Source: Mytilus californianus
Taxonomy: Eukaryota
Length of the DNA: 64,000 nt
NCBI RefSeq assembly: GCF_021869535.1
Contig: NW_026262690.1
Span: forward strand, 77,996,001 to 78,060,000
Direction: 5' to 3'
Shown: in pieces, positions 14,715-64,000 of the stretch
Layout of the letters: each line of letters starts with the position of its first letter
How positions within the stretch are numbered: the first letter of the stretch is position 1
Made by a program: the position numbers and the translations under genes
Notes under the pieces: generated by a model
The model's database searches: none
Told to the model about the DNA's origin: nothing
What the model saw: only the letters and a program-made list of their open reading frames with translations

Positions 14715-17382
14715 TAGATAATGATAATAATGGGCGATATCAATATTGATTTTACAGGGGGGTGCTTGAACAATAAATGGGGAAGTCTTTTACATACACA
14801 ATCTATTGTACAATTAATTGATACTCCTACCCGTATCACATCAACATCAAGTACAATCATTGATCATGTTTATACTAACCACCCTGAAAATATAGTTGAA
14901 ACAAATGTCCCCAAAATAGCCCTTAGTGATCACTATCCAGTATGCATTACGAGAAAAATAAACTAAAAAGATATCCCGAGCTTACAACATAAACAAATTC
15001 GGTATCGATGTTTCAAAAACTTGAATGAAAACATTTTTTGGAGGATTTAAATAAGACAAATTTTGCTCAACTAGAACAAATAAGTGACATTCAATCTGCC
15101 ACTGACATGTGGTATAAACTATTTCTGTCAGTTATTAACAGACATGCTCCTGTCAAAGTTAAAAGAATTAAACATATACGCCAACCAGATTGGCTTACAG
15201 ATGAGGTGAAAGTCGCTCAAAAGAAAAAAAAATATTATCAAAGCAAGAGGGACGTTATTGGCGCAACAAATGTACCAAATTAATAGAAAACTCTAAACAG
15301 TCCTATTTCAAGCAAGCAATAGAAAATAACAAAAAACCTAAAGAAATTTGGGCTTTACTTGAAGATTTAAAACCCAAAACACAAAATGAAATTCCATCTA
15401 CCATGAATTTTGACAATAAAGAATATGATAATATGCAAGATATAGTAAATCATTTCAACACACACTTTACAACAATAGGCGATATATATGTAACAAATAA
15501 CACGCAATTTCAAGAAAATAAATTAAATGATTATGTTCAAGATAAAATACCCGCTGGTGTTAAATTTAAGATTCCATTTATTAAGCTAGATGAAACTGAG
15601 AAATTACTTTCTAAACTAGAAACAACCAAAGCGACTGGACTTGATGAAGTTGGTCCGTTTTTCATCAAATTGTCATCGGATGCTTTAGCCCCAACGGTAT
15701 AACGTATTTAATAATTCTAAGTATACTAGAAGGTGTTTTCCCAGAAATTCTTAAATTAGCTAAAGTAAATCCAATATTTAAAAATGGTGATAAACACACG
15801 CCAGAAAACTACAGACCAATATCAATACTTCCTACTCTATCAAAAATACTTGAAAAACATGTCGCAAAACATTTTTATCTATATCTGTCAAAATATAAAG
15901 TATTACACGAGGCACAATCTGGATTCCGATCTAAACACTCATGTCGGACAGCCCTTACCAAATTAATTGATACCTGGATTAAATGTATTGATGATGGCAA
16001 TGTTGTAGGAACAATCTTTCTAGATTTAAAAAAAGCATTTGATCTGGTTAATCACGTCATTCTCTGCCATAAATTACATTTATACAAAGTCTCTGATCAT
16101 TCAATAAAATGTTTTGAGTCGTACCTGTCTAACAGAAAACAAAAAGTGTGCTCTGGTAATACAGTCTCAGATTCTAAATGTATCAAATATGGGGTTCCCC
16201 AAGGGTCTATTTTAGGTCCCCTTCTGTTTGTTTTATTCATAAATGACATGACTTTAGAAGCCACTCATACAGCCATTGATATGTATGCTGATGATACAAC
16301 ACTTCATACATATGGAACAAACAAGGAAGAGATAGAAAGAAAATTAAATTACGATGCCAACACCATACATAGTTGGTGTTCGAACAATAGGATGGTTATG
16401 AATCCTTTAAAAACTACTTCTATGTTGATTGGAACAAATAAGAAACGGACTTTGCTAGGAAATGATATGAATATATCAATGCAAGATAGCCCAATCACAC
16501 CCGTTGAAATACAGAAACTTTTGGGTGTATATATTGACAAAAATTTGGACTGGAAATTTCAAATGGACAATGCATGTAAAAACTTAAGTTCTCGTATCGC
16601 ACTGCTATCTAGAATTAAGAAATTTTCGGATATTAGTAGTAGAAAGCTGTATTATATATGTTTTGCTTATATTCTGCCCATATTTGATTTTTGTTGCTCA
16701 ATATGGGGAAATTGTTATGAAGATGGATATCACAAATTTCTTAAAATGCAGAAAAGAGCTGCAAGGATTATACTTGATGCACCAATACTAACACTTAGTA
16801 AAAATTTATTTAAAGAGCTAAAATGGTTAAATTTCAAATCTAGAATTTCATATCATAAACTTATTCTTGTTCATAAAATTCTCAACGATAAAGCACCTGA
16901 TTACTTAAAGGAACTCTGTTGTCCAATTGTTAACCTACATAGTAGAAATAGAAGGTCATCTGCAAATAATAATTTAGCTGTTGTGCGACCGAACACAAAT
17001 TCAATGAAGAAATCTTTCACATAGAGCTCCTCAATACTTTGGAATAAACTACCAATTGAAATAAAATGTTGTGAAATCCTGGACACTTTTAAACAAAAAT
17101 GTGTAGATTTCTTAACTGTAAATGATTTATAACAACACACTCATATATTCTAATGATTTTGTATTTTATGTATATATATATGAATTTAATTTTCTCTTGT
17201 TCTACAGACGACAATGTATAGTTAGCATGAATATTGCATCTACATAATATGTTCAAAATTGTAAGCTTTGTAATATTTGTACTTTTTGTTCTTATAGTGA
17301 GGGCCTCTAGGTAGATTAGTGAATGCTAATTGAGTCACCCTCTTTAAATAAAGTCATTACTAACTTACTTACTTACTTACTT
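14715..17382 (+). mobile_element. 5'-truncated CR1/L2-group non-LTR retrotransposon (APE C-terminus + RT + 3'UTR), inactivated
   Basis: Endonuclease motifs IIMGDINID, TPTRIT, IIDHVYTN, SDHYPV. RT motifs KATGLD, ENYRPISILPTLSKILEK, QSGFRSKHSC, FLDLKKAFDLVNH, GVPQGSILGPLLF, YADD (16284-16295). Premature stops at 14964-14966 and 17022-17024 plus frameshifts; natural stop likely 17130-17132. AATAAA at 17347-17352 and an (ACTT)5 tail at 17363-17382. Confidence 0.92.
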
Positions 17383-22479: not shown

Positions 22480-22650
22480 TGTGTGTGACTCCGATTTTGA
22501 TTGACAAGGATTGCCCAATTTTCTACTGAATGTCTGTGGTTTTCTCCGGGTACTTCGGCTTCCTCAATCAATAAAAACTGACCGCCATGATTTAGCTCAA
22601 TGTATCTTAAAGTGATATAAATACCAACAAACAAAACAAACAAAATAAAC
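22480..22650 (+). mobile_element. 3' fragment of the same SINE family as 21093-21365
   Basis: GGTTTTCTCCGGGTACTTCGGCTTCCTC...AATAAAAACTGACCGCCATGATTTAGC followed by an A/C-rich tail. Confidence 0.75.
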
Positions 22651-22693
22651 AACTTAAACTTTTTCATCATGTATTTTAGGTAATTTCATCTAG

Positions 22694-23234
22694 AATTTGT
22701 TGGATTTCTCAAGGAAACCTGAACATGAGAAAATGCCGCTTCCTATAACGTCTTCAGTGGACTATAGACTATTGGAGTGCAATACATATTTACCTATTTT
22801 GAACAAAATAATATTTGATGAGTTGACTGAGCTACTCAGGGAACTTTTACAGCATTCTATTGCCAATTCTAAAATAGAAGACTATTATCATGCAGTTAAA
22901 AGAAAGTTAAAGAGACGATTTACCCAAAGAGAAGAAGAACTCATATTCAATGCTTCAAGAACTGGATACCGACCTTTCGACATAACAGTCATAGCGGTAC
23001 TCCTTCGACATTTTTACGAGAAAAACAATGTTGAAACACATATAACATCACTGATCAGAATTAGAAACGAGTTATGTCATTTAAAAAATACAAATATAAC
23101 AGAATCACAGTTTGACATCTATTTTGGCGAGTGCTGTGACATAGCCTTTGCTTTGGAGGAATACCTGAAGAAACCGAAGTTTTTGGTGCAGAAATTCCAA
23201 ATTATATACGAAGTTAACACACGTTCCAAACAAG
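22694..23234 (+). CDS. HEPN_DZIP3-like domain exon of the HEPN-TIR gene
   Basis: Reads ...RPFDITVIAVLLRHF...ITSLIRIRNELCHLKNTNITESQFDIYF..., fitting the FDIT..LLR / IR.IRN.L.H / I....F pattern of DZIP3-like HEPN domains. R-N-E-L-C-H at 23063-23080. Donor G|GTAATA at 23235. Confidence 0.75.
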
Positions 23235-26200
23235 GTAATATTCATTATGGATGTTATTTTTAAAATATATATCACTCATGACTGCTGTGTGTATAATATT
23301 GCACAAATGCCTCAAGTACAACAGTAATGCTCCAAAATTGTTTATCCTGAACCGTTTTTTCCCTTTCATAAATTAAGCTATTAGGTTTTCCTTATATGTT
23401 AAACGAACTAAATGATTCATTAAATAATAGTCTTCTTATACTTTTTAACCGGATTTTCTTATTTAAAAGAAAAATCGGTTATTGATTTGGGGATGTACGG
23501 CGGGCGGGCGGGCGGCTGCCAAACAGTGTCCGTTCATTAACATGGAAACGCTTTGACGAAATCTTTTCAAATTTAGATATGTTGTTTCCTGTAACTAAAT
23601 AAAGATCAAGTTCAATTTTCACGATTTTAGCTGTTCTCGTTGTTGAGTTGTAGACCTTTCAGTAGCAAAAGTGATTCTAATTATGATTTTGAGTTATTTC
23701 CCTTTGAACAGAAATGGTGTAATTAATAAGTAATTTCTATGTCATTTGGTCTCTTGTTTATATTTTGAGTTATTTCCCCTTGAACAGAAATGGTGTAAAT
23801 TATAAGTTTATCAATGACTGTATCTGTTCAAATGATTTTAGTCAGGAGTTGTCAAAAACTTCTTTATAACTATTTTTTTTTTAAAGTTGTGTGTTTTGAA
23901 GGTAGATGTCACAGTTGTTCTGTGGTATTTTCTTTTTGTTGTGTGTGTTACTGTTTAATTAAGTTCTTTGACCACATTCATTTTGTGTCACAAACCTATG
24001 CTGTGTCGAATATTCAATCACAATCCAAATTCAGATCTGTTTTAAGCTTAAATGTTGTGTCCATACTTGCTCAACTGTAATCAGGGTTCGACCTCTGTAG
24101 GAAAATCCGGTTTGCTGTCATTTGACAGCTTCTTGTTTATATTTTAAAAAGGTTTTTGTACATCAGGGAAATCAGAGAAAGACCACTTATGATAAAAAAC
24201 GGGTTTTATTTGACTGCTGTGTTTTTTATTTGCAGATAGAAATGGCATACAAATAGAAACAATAAAACATTCATTGTTGGATCTCGAACTCGCAGTAAGT
24301 GTTGATGGTGATATCACAAAAGACAATATGATTTATAACTCAGTCAAGTTTAACTCAATACTGAAACGTTAGAAATGCGAGAACAGGAAATAATAAAAAA
24401 TGTTCAACATAATTTTGTTAGAAATTATAGATACATGTACAGAAAAGATAAACATTAGTACTTAAATATGTCGAAGAATGTACAGGTCAATAGATTGCTG
24501 ACATAATATAGATTTAAGTCTTTTTTCAAATTTCAGTGTGAAGGCATACATTGTTCAGAATGGGAGGAAAGACTTGAATTCTTGGAGGAAAATATAAGTC
24601 AGATAGACAGAGAAATAAATGAAAGCCATAGAAAACTGGTTTATTTGAAGAAATATGTACAGCAAGTAAGTTTAACATATAGAAGCATCACCATGCAAAT
24701 TAAAAAAAACATTATGAGAACCTACATAAAGAACTGAACGCAGATAACAGTTAATTAAAAGAGATGTGGTGTTTTGCGTAAATAAACAGCATCTAACGAT
24801 TGAAAACCTATTGATATTTAGATTTGTTTTCTTAAAAAAAAATAAACGAGATGTATATTCTATATGTCAAGCGATTAAACGCCAGATAAAAAATATCAAA
24901 GATCTCCCATCAATACTCAAAATGGATAAAAACATTAGGACATGAGATGAATAACGACTCACAATATTATTGACTTGTGCAAGGCATATGTATTTATTGG
25001 CGGGCTTCAACTAGTTTTTTTATAACTTAAGGTAGATAGGGTGTCTTCCTCCATCTTGGATTTTGAAATACCAGAAAACAGTCGGTCTAGATTTATAATA
25101 AAAGGTGCAAATTTTGAGAGTAGGTGGTAATTCATGTGTAAGAATATTCATTTCAATATAGAAAATGACATATTTTATCATATTTATGGTTGTATTTTAC
25201 AAAAAAACAGAATACTTTTGTTTGATTCTATTTTTTCCAACTTTGCCACATAAGGGGAGGCAACTCAAATGTAAGGGCAGATAATTCACATAATGTTACT
25301 TTTACAATAGAATGTGTTAGGAATTTACCTATTTTATTATGTAGCAAGAAAACGGGTCCGGTGACCCCATTTTTTCTTTTTCTTATATGAAAGCATACTA
25401 TTAACCCTATCTTCTCATATTTTATCTCAAAATTCTATGGTGTAGTTTTCATTTTATGGCAGAAAATTGGGTTTTCCATGCATAATCTATACAAAATCTG
25501 TCAATTTTGCACAACCTGTAGCGTGAAAATAAGGCCCGTGACCCATTCTTTTTATTATTTTTTTGAAAAAAGCATGATATAAACTACATTTTGGCAAATT
25601 ATCAAAAAATTCTATGGATTATAATTTAGACACCCCATCTACCTTAACCTTTTTTTCTCTTAATCTCGATAAAAAAAGAACATCAAATAAATACCAGTAC
25701 AGAATAAGTACTTACTCTTATATTACAATACAATAGATAACAAAAACCACAACTATTATACATACTACCTTATCAAAGAATGATCGCTCTTACAATCTCA
25801 AAAGAAATAAAATTGCCGATCATCGAAGTGTACCCATGCTAAATTTCGGTGAAATCATGCTGTTCTAAAATCTATCATCGAAGTGCACCCATGCAAAATT
25901 TTGGTAGAGTACTGGTTATTTCTAATAAATTTTTTGAAACAGTGAAAACATGTCTAAGAACATCAACGCAAAATTAAAGAAATCTTGATTCTGTCTCTGC
26001 CCAAAATTTGTTTATTTTTTTTTCAAACAAACGCATGAGGCCACGCCAAATTAATACCTCGTTCGTCGGATTTCCCGCGTGTTGTGAAAGGTCGATCAGA
26101 AAAAAGTACTTTTTTTAAGAACCCGCGTCCAGTACGGAGCCGCGCGCGTCCGCCTCTAAATTTATGAAGCAACAATTTTGATCAGTTGTGCGTTTGAAAG

Positions 26201-29200
26201 TAACGCCATACAGACATAGAAATTGACATTAAAAACGATCTAGATCTAACATTCACAACGTTGTAAATTTAGTATGATAATCATTCTTAACGTAAGACAG
26301 GAGTGGAATATTGGTAGTTACAGTGGTAACGCAGGCAAACACATCAGTAGAATTTGTGATTTGGGCAATTCTTTTACCGATTTGTTGGAAGTGCTTCCTG
26401 CATAACACTAAACTACAAATTATTACGACCCAGGAAATATGACAGCAATTTTATGACCAGCTGCAACTACCATCTCTAAAAGATCGTCGAACCCAAAACA
26501 GATTTATCCTCTTCTGCAAAGGCATACACGATCAAGCCAACTTACCATCTGTTTATGATGATCTGATCAACTCAACGGAGAAAAAAAAACATCTAGGACA
26601 ACCAAAAACATGCATTTATATGGCCAACATTTCCTGAGACTGCAAACAAAACCAGACACATTAAAATTCTGCTTCATACCAATACAATTAAAGATTGAAC
26701 CTACTACAACTGGGTATTTTCACCAAGATTTAAACAGCAGAAGAACCAGCTAAAACTTTCAGTGTCACAGTGAGGGGTGTCCAACTAAGCGAATTACTAG
26801 AATCACGTTTGGTGTAGTAATATCCTTGAATGATTCACTGTATACCTATCAAGATCAAACGATAAAGCAACGACATCACCGAACTGAAAAAATTAAATTG
26901 TGACAATATACATGATAAAACATGCATAAGAATAAAAGAGAATCCCAAAGCTGATGATACATGAATTGAAATGGCACCTCAACCGAAACTATTTTATTGA
27001 TCTTTTTTTTTTTTTTTTAGAATAAAGGTTTTTCCTTTAAAATTTTGAAATTTATTTATATATGCTTGTATCATTACAAAGTAATATTAAAATAAAATGG
27101 AAAATGGAAAGGGGAATGTGTCAAAGAGACAACAACTGAACAAAGAGCAGAAAACAGGGAAAACAGCCCAAGACCACCAATGGGTCTTCAACAAAGCAGG
27201 AAAATCCAGCACCAGAGGCTGGCTTCAGCTGACCCCTAAATAAAGGCAACAGTAGTATACCGCCATCTAAAAGTCATAAATCGATTGAGAGAAAACAAAT
27301 CCCGGTTACAAAGTTAAACCGAGGGAAACACATCAACTTTAAGAGGAAAACAACGAAATAACAGAACACAGAAGTGCAACAAAAAACAAACAACAATGCA
27401 ACATTCATAGAAACGATATATTAAATAACAACTGCCATATTCCTGACATGGTACAGGACATTTTAAGAAAAAATGGTGGGTTGAACCTGGTTTTGTGGCT
27501 AGCCAAACCTCCGCACTTTATGGCAATGTTAAATATACCGCTAACATGACAACATTACATGACGGGAACAGAGTACAAATAAATGCAAAAACACCAAAGA
27601 CAGAGAAATACATAAATAAATATTATAATAGTACATTTCGACATGTTAACCACATAATAACTAAAATAATTTAGGATAGTACACAAAACAGCTTAATAGA
27701 ATTACGAAGTGTGTGTCTGTAACACGAATGGATCAACGCCACAAAAAGTAACGTCACATTTTTTGAGGTTTGCAACTACTTCACGGTATGGCCTTCAACA
27801 CAGAGCAATGTCCACATGCATATATTCATGTATATATACCCGGTATGTAAATTTGATTATCATTAAATTCTACAGGAAAGCAGTGACTTAAGTGGAATGT
27901 ATTGAAATGTTCCTTTCGTTTAGTTAGTATATAGCATCTTATGGGTTCATTTGAATGGTATAAATTGGTGTGGTTTTGTATGGTCAGTCCTTTATTAATG
28001 TTCAGCTTGTTAATATACAGAAATATTTTTGGATGTATATACAAGCTTTATACATGCATTTATGCTTTGTATACTTTATTTAAAGTAACATACAATGCAT
28101 CAATTATAATTTACATTAAACACGGACGCATGCCTGTTCAAAGCTGTTGCACTTTTTCATGTTCAGCAGGATCATATTTATTTGATTAGACTACACAAAG
28201 TTGTAGGTTTTGCTACAAGTTAACCATTTTATACTTGGAAATGTTTTGAAAAGATTAAACTGGATGTTAGAGAACAAATAGAGAAGCAAAGAAGGTTAAT
28301 ATAAGAACTAGGATGTGAGATATATAAAATATAAAGCACCGAAACTATGTAAATTTCTAATCGCTCGCTTGCTTAAAATTCTTTTCACAGATTTTTTTTT
28401 AAATATTTCAAAAATAATATCGCTCGCTAGTAAAAAATTTCTTCGTCTGCCAAAAATCAATTTTCAGAAAAAAAAAAACAAATGAAAAAATTTCGCTCTC
28501 TCGCTACCCTTTTTCAAAGGAAAGAGTCCGAAGAACTAGAATTTGATTTGGTGTGGCCTAAACGTATTCTTTTTTTTTCGGCTTAAAATTTGTTTAATTT
28601 TCTCAAACGAACTCATAAACGTATTCTCTATTTTTTTTTGCTTTACCAAACTTCTAATATAAATGGCTTTCAGTATAAAACAACTATTTTCAACATTTTG
28701 ATTTGTTAACAGCGAACTTCATTTAAACGATATAACCTGTGAGAGCCATATGGAATGTCCAACTTTCGATTAAATTTGTCCATTTGAAAAATACTTCATC
28801 AATAAATCTGTATGTTTGTGAAACAATAAAAGTTTTGACCAACATATGCTATTTATATATTTTTTTTAAAAATTTTTTTCTAGTAATACTTGAAATTTAA
28901 TGATCGAAGACAGTACCAAAGAGATGTTTCTCTCCGCGGTAGTTGAAATCAATGCATATCCCTGTACTATTTTAAATATGCATTGAAATATTGTATAATT
29001 TACAGGTGAAGGAGAAATTTGATGCACCAGAAGAAAAACAGTGGTTTGGAACTTCAAAAGGTGATTTTTTTATTATCACAAAAGAAATAAGGACTATCGC
29101 AAATATTTTCAATCAGGTTCATTCAAAAATATATATGAAACAATACTGGATTTTTATGGTCTATTCGGTACGTACAAGACATGCTTTCTTCTACCAGGAA

Positions 29201-32200
29201 AGGATCTATACTATAACTTTGATTACTCATTACTTGATATTATCGATTTTGTCTTCATACGGTTTCTTTCATAATTATTTGAATTTTTAAATCTCTCATT
29301 AAGAAAAAGCATTTGTCAATAAAAAAATAATACCGAAAAATATTTCCTTGGAGTGCGGTATTTTTGCTATTTGTTATTTGTGTGTTGAAGTCTTCGTTTC
29401 ATCTCAATCTAGAAGAAGTAATACTTTTTATATACATATCTATAGTATTAATACCATTAAAAATCTAGAATACCATACCGGAATGTATTAGTATTAGGCT
29501 TTATTTTTTAGACGAAGAACAAATTGAGACTTATGGACTTAAATGTAGACAGAAAGTCGCAAATGCCAGGGTAAGAACACTGTTTCTTTATGCTTTATGC
29601 AAATTAAATGAATTGAAAGGAGACATTCGCACAGGAAATGATTATATCTTGGGTCATAAAATTTAAATTGAAGAATCAAACAGTCAAGAAAATTCCATAT
29701 ATATAATTCTAAAAGGCATTATAAAAGATTCAAAGTCAAAATGTTCTCTAAAACATATACTAGAGACTCCGTTTTCATAGATACATAAGATGAAAAGGAT
29801 GAACAATAATTCATTAAAATTATATTTCTTTTGTTAATCAGATGTAATGTTTAACATCAATACTACTCAACCATTTTTAAATTGAATTTAATTTGAACAA
29901 GCCTTGTAAATTTTTTACATATCTTTCTTCTTATTCCTTATCATTATCTTCAATTTTTGAGTATCAAAATCAATGGAACGTTAATGTTGCTTTTTCAAGA
30001 ATCTTATATTTTTATACCCGCATGTTTCAAATTCCAACACATTCCTGATCAATAGTTTTATTTGTATGTAACTAAAAAACTTTACTAGTTAAGATAAACG
30101 CATAAAATATACCCGAACTATATTTTATGCGTTTATCTTAACTAGTAAACACATAAAATATACCCGGCCTATAAACGAGTAATACAAACTGTTATTAGAT
30201 ACGAGTGTTTATAGCCTTTAGAATAACTGATTAGGACATATTCAAAATAAAATTGAAAATAAATAACTTATGGTACTTACTGTCATATGAGTGAGAGGTT
30301 TAGCTAGCTATTAAACCAGGTTTAATCAACAATTTTCTACATAAGGTGGTGTCTGTACCAAATCAGGAATATGACAGTTGTTTTCAATTCGTTTTATGTA
30401 TTTCAGCTTTTGATTTTGATATTTAATAAGGGTCTTTCCGTTTTAAATTTCCCTTGGAGTTCGATATTTTTGTTATTTTACTTTTTCAAATGCTTATACG
30501 TGGTAAAGAGAACCCGATCGACAATCTCAGCAAACCGATGGTTCTGCAATTCAAAACTGCTTGTAATTTAAAGTTATTGAAAGACATCATTACATGCAGC
30601 TCTCTCTCTCTTTCTGTAAACATCATAGCTGAGCATCAACTACAAATATACTGTTGGCATACCTTAGTGATGGAACAGTATAATATGGATTAATAAAGGA
30701 TTTCTTTTTGTCACTTGGATTGGTAAATTCTTTTACCGTTTAAAAACAAAAGTTTTTCTCGAATCTTTAAATAATAAGTAATTATCGAATTCATGCAATA
30801 ATTATACATGAAATCCATGCATATTGCTGCACACATATTGATTTTTACAGACTAAACTTCATCTGCCTTTGTGCAAATCAGAAGAATCTAGCCGAGAACA
30901 TGATAAGCTCAGATGTAAATGGCAAATGAACAAACAACCTCCTATACGTTCGTATGGGTAAGTTTTTGTTAAACAGAATTGTCCTATATATCTTTTTAAA
31001 GTACAGGAAATTTTTTTTACTATAAATTGTGATAGGAAACTGGCTATAGAAATCTTCAACATATAGTCTAAATAATGACACTTGCATTATCTTTGAAAAC
31101 AAATAGAAAACCGTCATTTAGTGTGATTTCATTGCCAATATATTAGCACACACTTATTAATACAAAATCATGTATTCCGTTTTGAATTTCTTACAAAAGA
31201 GTATTTTGTGGTTTTGATTTATTTTATATGTTTTGTTTCTATCACGAAAAATCTGTCCTTAAGAAAACTATGTACGCAAAAGCCTAATGTTTGTCACAAC
31301 GTCTAATGTCTGTTACATACCGCTATGTTCTAAGGTTCATTCTTATTGTAGATTAGAGACTGTAAATAGAAATGCAGAATATGGTATCATAAAATGTGTT
31401 GTTGAAAATTTACTACCGAACGTTCAACAGGAGTTTACAGAAAAAAATAATATTAAAGCATATAATGGAAGAAGTTCAAAGGACAAAGAAACATTCCACA
31501 ATTCTGCAGTTTTTTCCACTTTAAAAAAATGGGATAAGAAATCTAATGTTTTGATGCCAAACCAGTCAAATAATGAAGATCGACCAGTGGTTAGCATAAG
31601 AAATGTAACTAAATATAGTTGTGGTTTAGGAACAATTGCTTGTGTTAACAAGGAAACTACCAGGAATGATACCCTGTTGTTTAAACCAGACCCTGTGTTT
31701 GAAACAATCAATCAGTTTTCAGATGAAGTTGCAGGAATCTGTCCAAAACTTTCAAAAACAGAAACAAATGAAGCCGCCAAAATGGAATACACACGAAAAC
31801 CAGTAGACTTTCCCTTAATAGTTTGTGAAAAGGACCCGGAACCGGAATCCCGTTCAACATTTTCACCGCCACTCGATCACAATTATTTCAATTCAAATAA
31901 AATTGTTGTACCAGTAGGTAATGGAGAACATCGTCAACATAGACAATCTTACAAACCACATTCACTGAAAAAAATCAGTGAAGTTATCTTGTTGGCAAAA
32001 CAACTATCCGATGTGAAACCCAAAGCAAGAAAGTTATATGAAACTGTATGTGTTTTGATGAGAAACAGGTATATAATATATTAAGTCAGTCAAGTTTGGT
32101 AGACTTTGAATTGAAAAGTCAAAATGTAAAACGTCTGATATCATAAAAACCAAATGGCCCTAACAGGATAGCCAAACCAGTTTAAGATTAACTTTTTTTC

Positions 32201-34786
32201 ATATATGACAGTTGTTTTCCATTCGTTTGATGTGTTTGAACTTTTGATTTTGCCATTTGATTAGGGACTTTCCGTTTTGAATTTTCTTCGGAGTTCGATA
32301 TTTTTGTTATTTTGCTTTAGACTTAGAAAGCACAATCACGTTTAATGAACTGAAAATATACAAATAATGGTATCATTTAAATCAAGGCTACAGTAATCTA
32401 CCGATATTCAAATCTCGTAAATCGATTAGTATGAGACAAACAAAAACTGAATTACACTTTTGAAGTTTGAAAGGAGCGAGAACAGGTTTGTCGACAGGGT
32501 AAACGTCTCCTGTTATGCATGCATCACCCGCCAAGCGAATTCACACTCAGTCAAAATGTCATGAACGGAAATAAGACACAATCGGTTAAATCACAGATAA
32601 GACTACTTTACAGGCATCATAATATCGTAAACTGCGAAAAATATGTCGCTAGTGAGTTGAGACAACTTTACATCGTATCGGTCAACCAAATCGTGATAAT
32701 GACTGTAAAACTTATGCAGTGTTGATTTCCGTCATTCTTCCTTATAACTCTCTTAGAGTATTTTTTTGCAAGGAACACCTGTTAATGAAGTCCATTTGTT
32801 GTGAAGATGCCCAAGCGTTACGTATTAACTTCGATATGTAAACGCCATTCAATGTCTCAGAGGGTATGTAATTGCTGAGAAACGGGAAGTTGGCAATTGG
32901 AAAGTTGAAATCATTACGGTTGCCACAGATGCTAGTTTTGAGTCATCTATACGTGTCAATATCGTATCATTAGTCTTAAGTTCACTAGGACATATGGGAT
33001 ATAAAAAAAAAGGAAAATCACAAATATACTGAAAATTGTGGATTATTGAGTGATGAAATATCATCAGTATATCTGGAGGTGAAATAAAGAACTTTGCAAG
33101 ATGCCTTTCCTTGTATGAATTCAGCTTCATATTAGTACAAAAATAAGTCGGTCAGAAGTTCTGCACTGTTATTACCCATTTGAATAACGGTTGTCTGCTG
33201 AAATGTCAATGCAACAAACTCAACAAATATGTTTAAAAAACTAAAGCATTTTGAACATATCAACTTGACGGTGTATTTGTTGTGGGAATCAGTGTGAAGC
33301 CTCACAAAATAAGATTTTTCGTTACCTGAAACAAAGAGTTTGTATCTGCGTTTCCAATTTTTGTAGAAAAAGCTCTGTTTAATGAGACGATGTAGTGATC
33401 TTTCAGTTGCGCATGGGGAATAGTAGTGTAAAACGAAACAAAACAAAATACTGCATTTCAGTCGGAATGTATTCTCGGTGGACTTGTAGTCAGGAAAATG
33501 GCCATTGTTATATTATAGTTCGTTTCTGTGTGTGTTACATTTTAATGTTGTGTTTTTGTTGTGTCGTTGTTCTCCTCTTATATTTGATGCGTTTCCCTCA
33601 GTTTTAGTTTGTAACCCGGATTTGTTTTTATCTCTATCGATTTATGAGTTTCGAACAGAGGTATACTACTGTTGCCTTTATTGAAGACCTCAATCAACGG
33701 TGACGCGGAGAAGGGGAAGTAAAAATGTACAAACATTTTGACAACATATAAATCAAATTATTCTTAACAATCAACAAAAAAGTCGTAAAATAACAGCCAA
33801 CGTCGTATAATGTCAACTTTGCTTTAGGATAGTGCAGCCTCAGCAATATTTAGAAATGTTATATTCATATCTGACCTACTTAACTTTTCTAATATATTTA
33901 GGAATAGAAGAAGGAGAAAAAAGATGAAAGACCGTTTGAATGATCTGGGAGTAGATTGGAGGATGGGTGTTACAGAACTTGAATTAGAAGATATACCTCA
34001 AAGTAATTTCAATTGTTTGAGTTTGTAGCATAGAATGAAAATATTTTGTGTTTTTGGACGAAACATTCATTAGAAGAAATTAAATTATATCCTTTTGTGG
34101 GTTCTTATTTTTTCAAAAAAGATGCATTGTCCTGAAATATAAAATGAAAAAAAATAAATCACCCCAACTGACTTATCTCATCAACTAACTTATAAAAAGA
34201 TGAATTCTGTCCATCAAAGCATGTAGGTTCACTCAAAGTTTTTTTTTGTTATAAATGCGCTTACAACTTTCCGAACGCAACTGCTGAGTCTTGATAACTT
34301 ATTATTTATTTACCAAATGATCAACTACATTTCATTTACATATTTACAGGTATTGGTTGTTATTGTGGAACAGCTGTTGTACTCCATTCAGAACATAAAG
34401 AAGACTACCATGACGCAGAATATTTTCTTAAAGAAGTGAACAGAATATTGCCAGAGGTCAAAATAGAGCTTCAAGAAGAGGTGCGATTGCCAGGAAAGAG
34501 AAAACTTGACGTACGGCCGTATTTTTCTAGACAATATATTTTTGTGTTATTATCTAATTACAAGAAATCGCAAACGTTTAAATACATAGTCGACATGTGC
34601 TTGCTGTTATCCTTACAGGAGGAGGATAAACATGGAAGAGTTATTCCCGTTTTGTTTAGAAAGGAAGATGAGCTACCTGACGCGTTTCTTCTAAAAGAAC
34701 CAATAGAACATTATGATCAAAGTTCAATGAATAGACTGACACTTTTGTTTAAACCAAAACTACAAAGATCGATGTCTTGTTTGTGA
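22733..34786 (+). CDS. Predicted HEPN (DZIP3-like) - coiled coil - low-complexity linker - TIR (TRIF/TICAM-like) protein, 9 exons, ~721 aa
   Basis: Exons 22733-23234 (acceptor possible at 22694), 24236-24294, 24537-24665, 29006-29060, 29512-29570, 30851-30957, 31352-32068, 33902-34002, 34350-34786. All introns are GT-AG and the phases chain 1,0,0,1,0,2,2,1 with no in-frame stop; total 2166 nt ending TGA. AATAAA at 34951-34956. The start codon and the joining of all exons into one transcript are inferred. Confidence 0.72.
23442..24138 (+). mobile_element. HINE-like element in the first intron after the HEPN exon
   Basis: Subterminal inverted repeats AACCGGATTTT (23447-23457) / AAAATCCGGTT (24102-24112). 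(GGCG)n microsatellite at ~23498-23515. 3' hairpin GCTGTCA-TT-TGACAGC (24114-24129). T-rich ends. Confidence 0.85.
25031..25643. mobile_element. 613-bp MITE with TTAA target-site duplication (Kolobok-like, GG termini)
   Basis: TTAA (25027-25030) + GGTAGATAGGGTGTCT ... AGACACCCCATCTACC + TTAA (25644-25647). TIRs match at 15/16. No ORF. Confidence 0.85.
26400..26740 (+). mobile_element. 3' fragment of a non-LTR retrotransposon ORF2
   Basis: Decayed reading QLQLPSLKDRRTQNRFILFCKGIH...FIPNTIK, resembling the C-terminal RR...RL..YKI...F.P.TI..WN region of CR1/RTEX-like LINEs. Confidence 0.5.
27241..27600 (+). repeat. Abundant interspersed repeat, variant B (other copies ~33488-33680 -, ~45530-45810 -, fragment ~14112-14150 +)
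   Basis: Shared GGCAACAGTAGTATACCGC...CCTGAC.TGGTACAGGACATTTT...GGTTGAACCTGGTTTTGTGGCTAGCCAAACCTC sequence among the copies in this window. Confidence 0.85.
34350..34786 (+). CDS. TIR-domain terminal exon (TRIF/TICAM-like) of the HEPN-TIR gene
   Basis: Reads AVVLHSEHKEDYHDAEYFLKEV...EEVRLPGKRKL...RQYIFVLLSNYKKS...LLLSL...RVIPVLF...TLLFKPK. This parallels the recalled TRIF TIR elements FVILHARAD / EDFQVPGRGEL / FIILLLTSNF / CVIPFL / NTFK. BB-loop Pro-Gly at 34490-34495. Acceptor TTACAG at 34349. Confidence 0.75.
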
Positions 34787-40319: not shown

Positions 40320-41152
40320 TCAAGTGTAATATTGAACTGTTCCAATTAAGTCTTCCGCATCAGTTATATTTGGCTTTCTCAAGTCATTACTTAATTCACC
40401 AGTATCTTGTTGGTATGGACGATCGAACGCATCCATTTGCATTAACATTTGCTTCAAAATCGGAAGTGCAGATGCGTTCCGTTTTATTCCTATGACTGCA
40501 GCTTTCGTGGCATTGCTGTTCTTAACATATGTTTGTAATTCATTGATCGACTCGCTTTTCTAGCATTTTCCTTTATCTTAATTGACTTTAAATCTGTTAC
40601 AATCATTTTCACAACTTTGTCTATCAAATCTTTAAAGTCATTTCCATTTTTGTTGATATCCTTGCATAAGTTTTCTATATCCGAATTGAAAGTTTTCAAG
40701 TGCGATTCAAGTCTCTGAATGTAATTGTTCATTTGTGAGATTTCCATGGAAAATTGTTTCATTGTTTCTGACGATGGACTAGCAGTTGCCGTTATAAAAG
40801 CTATAATTTCGCACATGTCATGTCCTCTGTGGTCTTGTACGACACACATGTTGCAAGCAGCTTCTTCGCAGTCCTCACAGTAATAGATGAGTTCGTTTTT
40901 GTGTAACTTACACATGACTGGTGTTTGTTTCACGATAGGAGAGGACTGGCTTACATCGTTCTTTATATCTTGTCTTTTATGGGTCCGTTTAATATTGACC
41001 GTTGTCCCTCTGAACGTATGACTCCGACTGATGTGTGAACGTAAATGCAACGCCTTACAAGTATTACAGAAAAGTTGTTGACATTCCTCACAATAATCAT
41101 CGTTTCGAGCTACAGCAAAAATTTCACAGCTTTTAATCGGTACTTGTGCCAT
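40320..41152 (-). pseudogene. Intronless B-box1 + B-box2 + coiled-coil (RING-less TRIM-like) sequence with a frameshift
   Basis: MAQVPIKSCEIF...YCEECQQLFCNTCKALHLRSHISRSHTF (B-box1, second ligand position Phe) and CKLHKNELIYYCEDCEEAACNMCVVQDHRGH (B-box2), followed by a helical coiled coil. At ~40560 a second frame (40559-40320) stays open for 79 codons, ending LIGTVQYYT*, which is consistent with a 1-nt frameshift. Confidence 0.75.
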
Positions 41153-62736: not shown

Positions 62737-64000
62737 ATGAATTTAAGACACAGACAATTACCACTTCCTATGTTTTTAAATAATAGAGGGGGAGGGTCCC
62801 CAAGAGCTCCCTTATATAGTGTTAATTCCAATTTTTCTGACTTAACAAGAGAAAATGAGACACAATTTGTTTCAAATAGTGGATTATAAAATATGCCAAG
62901 TTTACATGGTTCTTCAAGTCAACTTACCTTGCCTGCTTTAACCAGTAATAATTCATTAAATGAACCGAGGGTGTCAATGATAAGAGACAGTGCACTGAGC
63001 ATTAATGTTCCTGTACAGAGTGCACTGAGCACAAACGTACAACACCAGAGTGCATCAAGCACATATATTCAAACTCAAGGTGCACCTAGCACATGTATTT
63101 CATCACAAAGTGCACTGAGCACTGGTCATTATACCCAAAGTGCACTGAGCACCGCTCCATATACCCATAGTGCACTGAGCACTGATCCTTATACCCAAAG
63201 TGCACTGAGCACTGGTCCATATACACAAAGTGCACTGAGCACTGGTCCATATAACCAAAGTGCACAGAGCATTGGTTCATATACCCAAAGTGCAACAAGC
63301 ACATTTATTCAAAACAGTAGCGCTTCAAACACTTATGCAAAAGTACAAGGTGTACCAAGCACATGGTCCTTTTCCACGGGAGGAATAAGCTCATCTAATG
63401 CCTCTAATCCATTTCATGATCAGACAAAAACGGCTAATATACCAAAAATCACATCGTTCAGTGACACCAGTTTCAACAGACCAATCAGCCATAATAACGG
63501 TGATGACCAACAAGGTGTATTTAAATTGAGAGAGAAAATAAGGGAAATTGAAAATGAAAGAGATTATTACAGACAGCAGAATAACCAACCAGATAATACA
63601 AGACAGCAAAATTTTCAAATTGAAAATGAAAGAGATTATTACAGATAGCAGAATAACCAACCAGATAATATAAGACAGCAAAATTTTCAATCAGAGAATG
63701 CAGGACAGCAAAATTTTCAACCAAATTATACTAGACAGCAAAACAACCAAATGAGATACCGAACAGACTCCACATCTAGCATGCAAGATAGTTATCACTC
63801 AAGACTACCATTCTACAATGGAAGAAGTGACTGGAGTACATTTCAGATGCAATTCGAAATAATTGCTGAAAGAAATAATTGGGACCCAAGACGTCAAGCT
63901 GAGGAAATATTACTGGTGCTTAAAGATGAAGCTGCAAAATTTGCATCAGAGCTACCGTATGACACAAGGAGCTCGTTTCGACTTTTATCCAAAGATATGG
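62737..64000 (+). pseudogene. gag: Gypsy gag-like ORF with two in-frame stops
   Basis: One frame runs from ATG 62737 to the window end with TAA at 62887-62889 and TAG at 63646-63648. The C-terminal part RLPFYNGRSDWSTFQMQFEIIAERNNWD...EEILLVLKDEAAKFASELP fits the Gypsy capsid pattern P.FDG...W..F..QFE..A..N.W...L...L.G.A. Contains 30-nt QSALSTGPYT repeats (~63107-63296) and a 72-nt duplication (63547-63618 / 63619-63690). Confidence 0.8.

Follow-up and report, generated by a model that had tools for sequence, protein, structure and literature searches.

Known animal TIR adaptors signal through death domains, kinases and transcription factors, and SARM1 through the consumption of NAD+, while the TIRs of bacteria are usually enzymatic. 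RNase L and IRE1, with their KEN domains, and Csm6 are HEPN RNases whose active site lies across a dimer and which are switched on by induced assembly. Here we describe a nine-exon gene at positions 22733–34786 (+ strand) of a 64,000-nucleotide (nt) stretch of the Mytilus californianus genome (C110:77996001–78060000 of the 1.65-Gb assembly, referred to below as the window), in which a DZIP3-type HEPN domain, a coiled coil, a long polar linker and a TIR domain are almost certainly joined in a single real gene.

DZIP3-type HEPN domains take the N-terminal effector position in bivalve and cnidarian NLR-like proteins, where the Rx4–6H motif is mostly kept (PMC9646362, PMC8260672, PMC3710099); they are abundant with NACHT in both groups (PMC9646362, PMC8260672) and also occur with TRADD-N (PMC8195603). 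The mussel protein shares with HEPN–NACHT and other HEPN_DZIP3 fusions the HEPN family, the N-terminal position and the RNxxxH motif, as well as lineage-specific expansion in marine invertebrates, but not the partner, as those given in the same papers are NACHT, Death, CARD, TRADD-N, LRR, RING, ankyrin and TPR, with TIR not listed (PMC9646362, PMC8260672, PMC3710099, PMC8195603; Roc–COR was seen as a HEPN_DZIP3 partner in an Atlas cluster only). Bacterial HEPN–TIR fusions have been listed, and prokaryotic examples such as those with a DUF4145-type HEPN also combine the same two superfamilies within a single chain, in the context of conflict (PMC3710099), but they use another HEPN family, whereas the Mytilus domains group with animal families. 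Nothing points to shared descent with these prokaryotic fusions.

The general plan is also that of MyD88, with a C-terminal scaffold TIR having a BB-loop Pro-Gly, a would-be output module at the N-terminus and a linker between them, and the MyD88 TIR is both the top Foldseek match and a profile match (E = 3e-3) of the mussel TIR. However, the mussel protein has no death domain and its N-terminus is a predicted RNase rather than a kinase-recruiting module, its linker is about 300 amino acids (aa) long and accompanied by a coiled coil, and the TIRs share 13–16% identity. The nearest TIRs are those of TRAM (TICAM-2), with a profile match at E = 8e-4, and TRIF (TICAM-1), and the basic patch beside the mussel TIR is reminiscent of the basic regions through which sorting adaptors are targeted to membranes. 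We detected no TRIF-NTD, RHIM or myristoylation signal in the mussel protein, however, and sequence identity is 12–19%. The HEPN of Csm6 is the best solved-structure match to the mussel HEPN, but where RNase L, IRE1 and Csm6 have ankyrin/2-5A, lumenal/kinase and CARF sensors, respectively, the mussel protein has no visible ligand-binding domain and a nuclease that is predicted.

Gene model and transcripts

The window is AT-rich eukaryotic DNA (GC content ~31%) in which the listing of open reading frames (ORFs) and three-frame translation revealed open stretches resembling exons on the + strand from 22733 to 34786. Spliced in silico, the nine exons encode 721 aa identical (by script) to the RefSeq 'uncharacterized protein LOC127698732 [Mytilus californianus]' (P0025), which was recovered by a search with a homolog and which tblastn places on the window with 100% identity. 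A sequence-only reading of the window had assembled the same nine GT–AG exons by hand, and because their translation exactly matches P0025, its 721-aa model and the RefSeq prediction agree letter for letter. All internal exon boundaries are GT..AG with pyrimidine-rich acceptors, and the exons are in phase without a stop codon. The layout that had been proposed (HEPN-like domain, coiled coil, long polar linker, TIR-like domain) also holds, with HEPN at aa ~13–165, a helical and coiled-coil region at aa 166–235 (the EERLEFLEE... peptide quoted in that reading falls in exon 3), a polar linker of ~300 aa, a basic patch at aa 541–554 and TIR at aa ~584–715, and Pfam found no membrane or secretory domain in the 721-aa protein. 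An ORF at 34196–34291 (KVFFCY) was considered as the first TIR strand and ruled out by a phase misfit, the whole of the TIR lying within exon 9. The parts of the gene are as follows:

22628–22732, + strand: minimal 5' untranslated region (UTR), from an 851-nt X2 contig (record 9) starting 472 nt before 23100, with colinearity with the genome assumed; the ATG is preceded by an in-frame stop codon.
22733–23234, + strand: exon 1 (E1), start codon and DZIP3-type HEPN domain (aa 1–168); Pfam PF18738 at 31.4 bits, 100% identity to P0025, HEPN fold matches.
23063–23080, + strand: HEPN Rx4H motif RNELCH (R111, N112, H116), invariant in eight family members and inside the predicted dimer interface.
24236–24294, + strand: exon 2, helical (aa 168–187); joint with exon 1 found in RNA.
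24537–24665, + strand: exon 3, coiled-coil segment EERLEFLEE...YVQQ (aa 188–230); joint with exon 2 found in RNA, helices in the AlphaFold2 (AF2) model.
29006–29060, + strand: exon 4 (aa 231–249); joint with exon 3 found in contigs of X2, X1 and X25.
29512–29570, + strand: exon 5, start of the linker (aa 249–268); in P0025 and spliced in the ortholog transcript L007.
30851–30957, + strand: exon 6, linker (aa 269–304); in P0025 and contiguous in L007.
31352–32068, + strand: exon 7, polar, fast-evolving linker (aa 304–543); 63–82% of its words present in the RNA-type runs X1–X4, and a ratio of non-synonymous to synonymous substitution rates (dN/dS) of 1.18 against L007.
33902–34002, + strand: exon 8 (aa 543–577); the basic patch RNRNRRRRKKMKDR (aa 541–554) is encoded jointly by this exon and the end of exon 7; basic cluster kept in the relatives P0002, P0003 and P0007.
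34350–34786, + strand: exon 9 (aa 577–721 and stop), complete TIR domain (aa ~584–715), from the family profile, AF2, Foldseek and the Atlas.
34490–34495, + strand: TIR BB-loop Pro624-Gly625, both residues invariant in 21/21 aligned TIRs.

RNA from the same species, comprising contigs from three sets and the raw reads of one RNA-seq run, was mapped to positions 23100–29099, which covers the joints from E1–E2 to E3–E4. The E1–E2 joint (23234/24236) is carried by one X2 contig and six raw RNA reads and the E2–E3 joint (24294/24537) by two contigs (X2 and X25) and eight raw reads, and the E3–E4 joint (24665/29006, GT..AG, 4340 bases skipped), which the sequence-only reading had singled out for confirmation, is found spliced in three contigs (X2, X1 and X25). 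In all of the raw junction reads the first mate is on the − strand, which corresponds to + strand RNA in the usual stranded library. The 851-nt X2 contig extends from ~22628, in the 5' UTR, across E1–E3 as far as the end of E4, and a 590-nt X1 contig (record 2) contains the last 115 nt of E3 followed by 475 nt further 3', of which only ~59 lie on the 23100–29099 stretch; this contig fits E4 and then exons beyond the read-covered stretch. The downstream exons are seen in a close relative, where the 1740-nt Logan contig L007 (SRR13891793) has 94.5% nucleotide identity to positions 563–2166 of the coding sequence and includes E3–E9 and the stop codon, intron-free. The two transcript lines overlap at E3–E4, and the claim of one chain is borne out as far as transcripts reach, from E1 to E4 in M. 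californianus and from E3 to E9 in the close relative.

Exon 7 (shares of 0.63–0.82) and exon 1 (0.42–0.61) are both represented in RNA-type runs from the same species, X1 and X2 being among the runs with both exons, and expression of the gene is low in the RNA runs examined, with an exon depth of ~5. Two further Logan contigs from relatives, L006 and L009, start in intron-like or unrelated sequence and are uninformative on the linkage of the HEPN exon.

Two observations on the transcripts should be noted separately. Stretches of introns 1 and 3 (23300–24100, 24900–25700 and 27100–27500) have RNA contig depths of hundreds to thousands, with reads on both strands, and look like transcribed repeats or transposon fragments outside the gene. 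At position 24537, the first base of exon 3, the genome has T (TGT, Cys188) while all eight of the raw reads and both E2–E3 contigs have G (Gly), and L007 likewise reads GEGIH; the difference probably reflects a polymorphism, or an allele specific to the reference.

The HEPN and TIR domains

Exon 1 passes the cut-off of 27 bits for Pfam HEPN_DZIP3 (PF18738) with 31.4 bits, and the precomputed Pfam annotation lists the same family on P0025 and on its M. edulis relative P0024. The motif RNELCH (aa 111–116) is an Rx4H with the usual Asn after Arg, and R111, N112 and H116 are invariant in eight aligned relatives; a third paralog, on chromosome C1, retains RNKLSH. An Atlas shape search with the AF2 model placed a mollusc HEPN_DZIP3 cluster first (template modelling score, TM, 0.54/0.65; root-mean-square deviation, r.m.s.d., 2.8 over 156 residues), followed by other HEPN families, and the Atlas's own model gave TM 0.72–0.81 to mollusc HEPN_DZIP3 clusters. 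Comparison with 48,161 chains using VIA-align gave the HEPN of Csm6 as the top match (Z 9.9, r.m.s.d. 2.8, 113 residues aligned, model residues 18–149), followed among others by E. italicus Csm6, the AF_0298 HEPN (Z 8.2) and AbiF (Z 8.0), and the matches covering residues 15–150 were HEPN proteins only, although for helical bundles a Z below ~13 can be generic. A profile of the HEPN family returned nothing meaningful from the PDB sequences, and a word-indexed protein search with the HEPN region recovered family members only and gives no census of other HEPN partners. We also observed Pfam DUF4559 (PF15112) at or near its cut-off on the HEPN and coiled-coil region of two relatives (P0026:76–243 and P0003:76–221, 27.0 and 23.5 bits), and DUF4559 may be a relative of HEPN_DZIP3.

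Beyond the HEPN domain, AF2 predicts helices at residues 166–187, 193–214 and 220–235. When two copies of residues 1–250 were modelled together a homodimer was predicted, with an ipSAE of 0.47 (three runs) compared with 0.01 for the best control, at least 77% of contacts common to the runs and partner predicted local distance difference test (pLDDT) values of at least 72. The mark set for a dimer was reached by 21 of 30 solved homodimers and by 0 of 23 monomers in the calibration, for which the figures are weaker among eukaryotes. The predicted interface is symmetric and contains R111 and residues 115–121 from both copies, with contacts including 115:115 and 111:115. The two R/H motifs would then face each other, as HEPN RNases are expected to have them.

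A profile was built for the TIR from 21 sequences (the phmmer matches, the members of their clusters and four paralogous exons of the same genome), and the best ten matches to it were all TIRs, with TRAM first and MyD88 among them. The AF2 model of the domain (pLDDT 80.7; predicted TM, pTM, 0.78) has the alternating strands and helices of a flavodoxin-like beta–alpha fold. Foldseek ranked the filament structures of MyD88, TRAM, MAL and TRIF first (E 3e-5 to 4e-4, TM 0.58–0.72), with SARM1, SPARTA, AbTir and Cat1 further down the list, and the Atlas TIR model is nearest to vertebrate TRIF clusters (TM 0.77–0.78). Both P624 and G625 of the BB-loop, whose Pro(-Gly) serves scaffold TIR signalling, are invariant in the 21 TIRs. 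In the column which we take to be that of the NADase glutamate, located through the TRAM alignment and the TIR_2 consensus, no conserved glutamate was found across the 21 TIRs and the residue is Ile, Lys, Thr, Gln or Leu; acidic residues are not conserved nearby either, and the closest column with any contains D, N, H, K, E, Q and R. Judged by sequence and predicted structure, the TIR is a scaffold of adaptor type with a TRIF/TRAM-like fold, outside the TRIF family.

Pfam detected no TRIF-NTD, RHIM or Death domain on P0025, the N-terminus being HEPN, and found no domain in the linker, whether in the exons or in the full-length protein. Against L007, dN/dS is 1.18 for the linker, 0.64 for the TIR and 0.51 for E3–E4, values which are indicative only as substitutions are few. 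The basic patch RNRNRRRRKKMKDR lies directly before the TIR and recurs in P0002, P0003 and P0007. The DZIP3-like HEPN with R-x4–6-H named in the sequence-only reading is confirmed by the Pfam score of exon 1, the intact Rx4H and the fold matches. Its TIR is recovered by the family profile and by fold, as HEPN_DZIP3 is by Pfam, but not at the Pfam TIR/TIR_2 cut-off, and its description of that TIR as 'TRIF-like' is correct at the level of fold, where TRIF, TRAM, MyD88 and MAL are nearest, but not as membership of the TRIF family.

A Mytilus family of HEPN–TIR proteins

An exhaustive phmmer search with the TIR exon against 1.84 billion representatives found only eight proteins, from Mytilus or from unnamed transcript contigs and including one spurious match. 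Proteins having the same order of parts, the architecture that the sequence-only reading proposed to look for in proteomes, are annotated at full length in five species (M. edulis, M. trossulus, M. coruscus, M. galloprovincialis and M. californianus) under names such as 'uncharacterized', 'TIR domain-containing' and 'DZIP3-like HEPN domain-containing'. No HEPN–TIR architecture was found outside Mytilus in the protein searches run, which do not prove absence.

In the M. californianus genome there are three loci in which a HEPN exon lies 5–7 kb upstream of a TIR exon on the same strand:

C110, this locus: HEPN and TIR on the same strand.
C110:78.44 Mb (equivalent to P0023): HEPN and TIR on the same strand.
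C1:106.54 Mb (motif RNKLSH): HEPN and TIR on the same strand.

TIR identities separate at least six lineages, four of them with HEPN. Between P0025 and P0024 the HEPN is 85% identical compared with 53% for the TIR, and HEPN is the most conserved part of the protein. The coiled-coil segment of exon 3 is missing from the nearest protein in M. edulis, P0024 (694 aa), which is probably a different paralog or the product of exon skipping or gene conversion. At the third locus the HEPN exon is intact in M. californianus (C1:106544078–106544485; L008:7585–7980, − strand), and the M. edulis proteins P0007 and P0010 keep only the first ~49 residues of this exon, which is likely to be an annotation mis-splice or a lineage difference.

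No description of an animal HEPN–TIR fusion was found in the literature searched, a search which did not take in Gerdol et al. 2017 on bivalve TIR proteins. Databases do already contain the architecture, because the gene model and its relatives are in RefSeq and UniProt, where they are unnamed or named for one of their domains only. The gene itself is modelled in RefSeq without a name and, as far as we found, is undiscussed in the literature searched.

Elsewhere in the window, a B-box zinc finger (PF00643) scores 48 bits in a 220-aa ORF at 40490–41152 (− strand), where it is accompanied by an ANCHR-like B-box and a coiled coil; this ORF is a TRIM-like exon ~6 kb downstream of the HEPN–TIR gene. 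Upstream, a 292-aa ORF at 16146–17024 (+ strand) matches the reverse transcriptase RVT_1 (43.5 bits) and is a retroelement fragment. A 251-aa ORF at 62893–63648 (+ strand) has repeated QSALST.PYT units and no Pfam match.

Proposed mechanism and alternatives

We infer the function of this protein from its predicted parts, and tentatively suggest that it may be a MyD88-style adaptor–effector in which a dimeric HEPN RNase replaces the death domain, a whole mechanism that we consider quite plausible while stopping short of expecting it to be right. The scaffold TIR would dock onto activated Toll-like receptor (TLR) or adaptor TIR assemblies, and the adjacent basic patch may aid membrane or nuclear targeting. 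HEPN and the coiled coil would form a symmetric dimer in which the two R/H motifs are joined into a composite RNase site, and the TIR, by recruiting or clustering these dimers, would concentrate or release the predicted RNase, with the cleavage of host or viral RNA as the result. Since such an RNase would cleave RNA directly, the pathway would have an output without need of transcription. In the sequence-only reading TIR assembly could dimerise and switch on the HEPN nuclease, but the HEPN and coiled-coil part is predicted to homodimerise alone and TIR-driven dimerisation would therefore be unnecessary; the models make it more likely that the TIR recruits or clusters pre-formed HEPN dimers than that it drives dimerisation. 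In its most specific form, that of a Toll-pathway adaptor with its own nuclease in which receptor-triggered TIR assembly recruits the pre-formed dimer and unleashes RNA cleavage, the proposal is possible but doubtful. If true, it would amount to a transcription-independent immune output in one protein, and an animal counterpart of prokaryotic sensor–effector defence and of RNase L that is wired to TIR signalling.

A number of results weigh against this interpretation. Regarding the gene itself, none of the data sets contains one transcript running all the way from E1 to E9, and L007 has one extra A in an A-run before the TIR (contig position ~1150; coding position 1643, aa 548), which as read would truncate the protein after the basic patch. 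This extra base may be due to faulty assembly, may belong to an allele or may mark a HEPN-only form that occurs naturally. The HEPN assignment is less clear for the full-length protein, which at 26.5 bits is just below the HEPN_DZIP3 cut-off, and the all-helical AF2 model of residues 1–250 is of moderate confidence (pLDDT 68); Foldseek found no match at E ≤ 0.001 for the HEPN and coiled-coil model in the PDB, probably with the long helices dominating the model, and to this can be added the generic range of helical-bundle VIA-align scores. The predicted homodimer is a prediction only, in which the pass reflects the model's own confidence, and it is subject to the weaker eukaryotic calibration. 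Pfam TIR and TIR_2 remained below the cut-off of 28 bits, with 15.4 bits for the exon in the window and 19.8 bits for the best relative (P0001), and TIR was not called by Pfam on single exons or on the full-length protein. Constraint relative to the ortholog also appears weak, at least from the small counts available for the TIR and the linker.

The alternative that fares best reverses the direction of signalling, with HEPN binding RNA, whether or not it cuts it, as an input that leads to assembly, and the TIR as the output which recruits MyD88-like adaptors. Some animal HEPN domains bind RNA (the HEPN of SACSIN has been studied in the literature), a role in sensing RNA in the cytoplasm has been proposed for HEPN-NLRs (PMC8662601), and adaptor TIRs, the type to which the mussel TIR belongs, nucleate filaments. 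Against this, HEPN takes the effector position in NLR-like relatives (PMC9646362), and the R, N and H residues are invariant across paralogs having 38–68% identity; the invariance of catalytic residues in such diverged paralogs argues for retained catalysis, and we regard an RNA-sensing HEPN of this kind as unlikely.

The same invariance bears on the suggestion that this is a fast-evolving TIR protein which titrates or dampens TLR signalling, with a HEPN that is vestigial or serves for dimerisation only. The dN/dS values of the linker (1.18) and TIR (0.64), the presence of TIR-only relatives in the family (P0004, P0019 and P0005) and low expression in the RNA runs examined would all suit a regulator or decoy, but the Rx4H is invariant and lies inside the predicted interface, and it is the HEPN rather than the TIR that is best conserved between P0025 and P0024, making such a role distinctly improbable. 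A TIR which consumes NAD+ in the manner of SARM1 would give one protein two enzymatic effectors, and SARM1, SPARTA, AbTir and Cat1 do appear lower in the fold list, while fused HEPN and TIR domains are known from prokaryotes (PMC3710099); the catalytic-Glu column is nevertheless occupied by other residues, the nearest acidic column is variable across the 21 TIRs and the best matches are scaffold adaptors, and we consider this very unlikely. That neighbouring HEPN–coiled-coil and linker–TIR genes were merged by the RefSeq prediction and the sequence-only reading alike is scarcely credible, as although no read set spans E1–E9 and Logan contigs L006 and L007 start in intron-like sequence rather than the HEPN exon, overlapping contigs cover E1–E4, 475 nt past E3 and E3–E9 in the ortholog, and HEPN and TIR are paired in the same way at three loci and across five species.

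The HEPN–TIR gene belongs with the domain shuffling of bivalve immune genes, and if its HEPN were inactive the finding would shrink to one more lineage-specific domain shuffle. As an adaptor–effector, a TIR adaptor with an RNase of its own would attack RNA directly, an output different from those of the known animal TIR adaptors. Such a protein would broaden the use of DZIP3-type HEPN as an N-terminal effector module, reported so far with NACHT, Death, CARD and TRADD-N, and would add to the very diverse TLR/TIR repertoire of bivalves. The family is small, Mytilus-restricted in these searches and expressed, with at least three HEPN and TIR loci, and it therefore offers a tractable case for the study of HEPN function in invertebrates.

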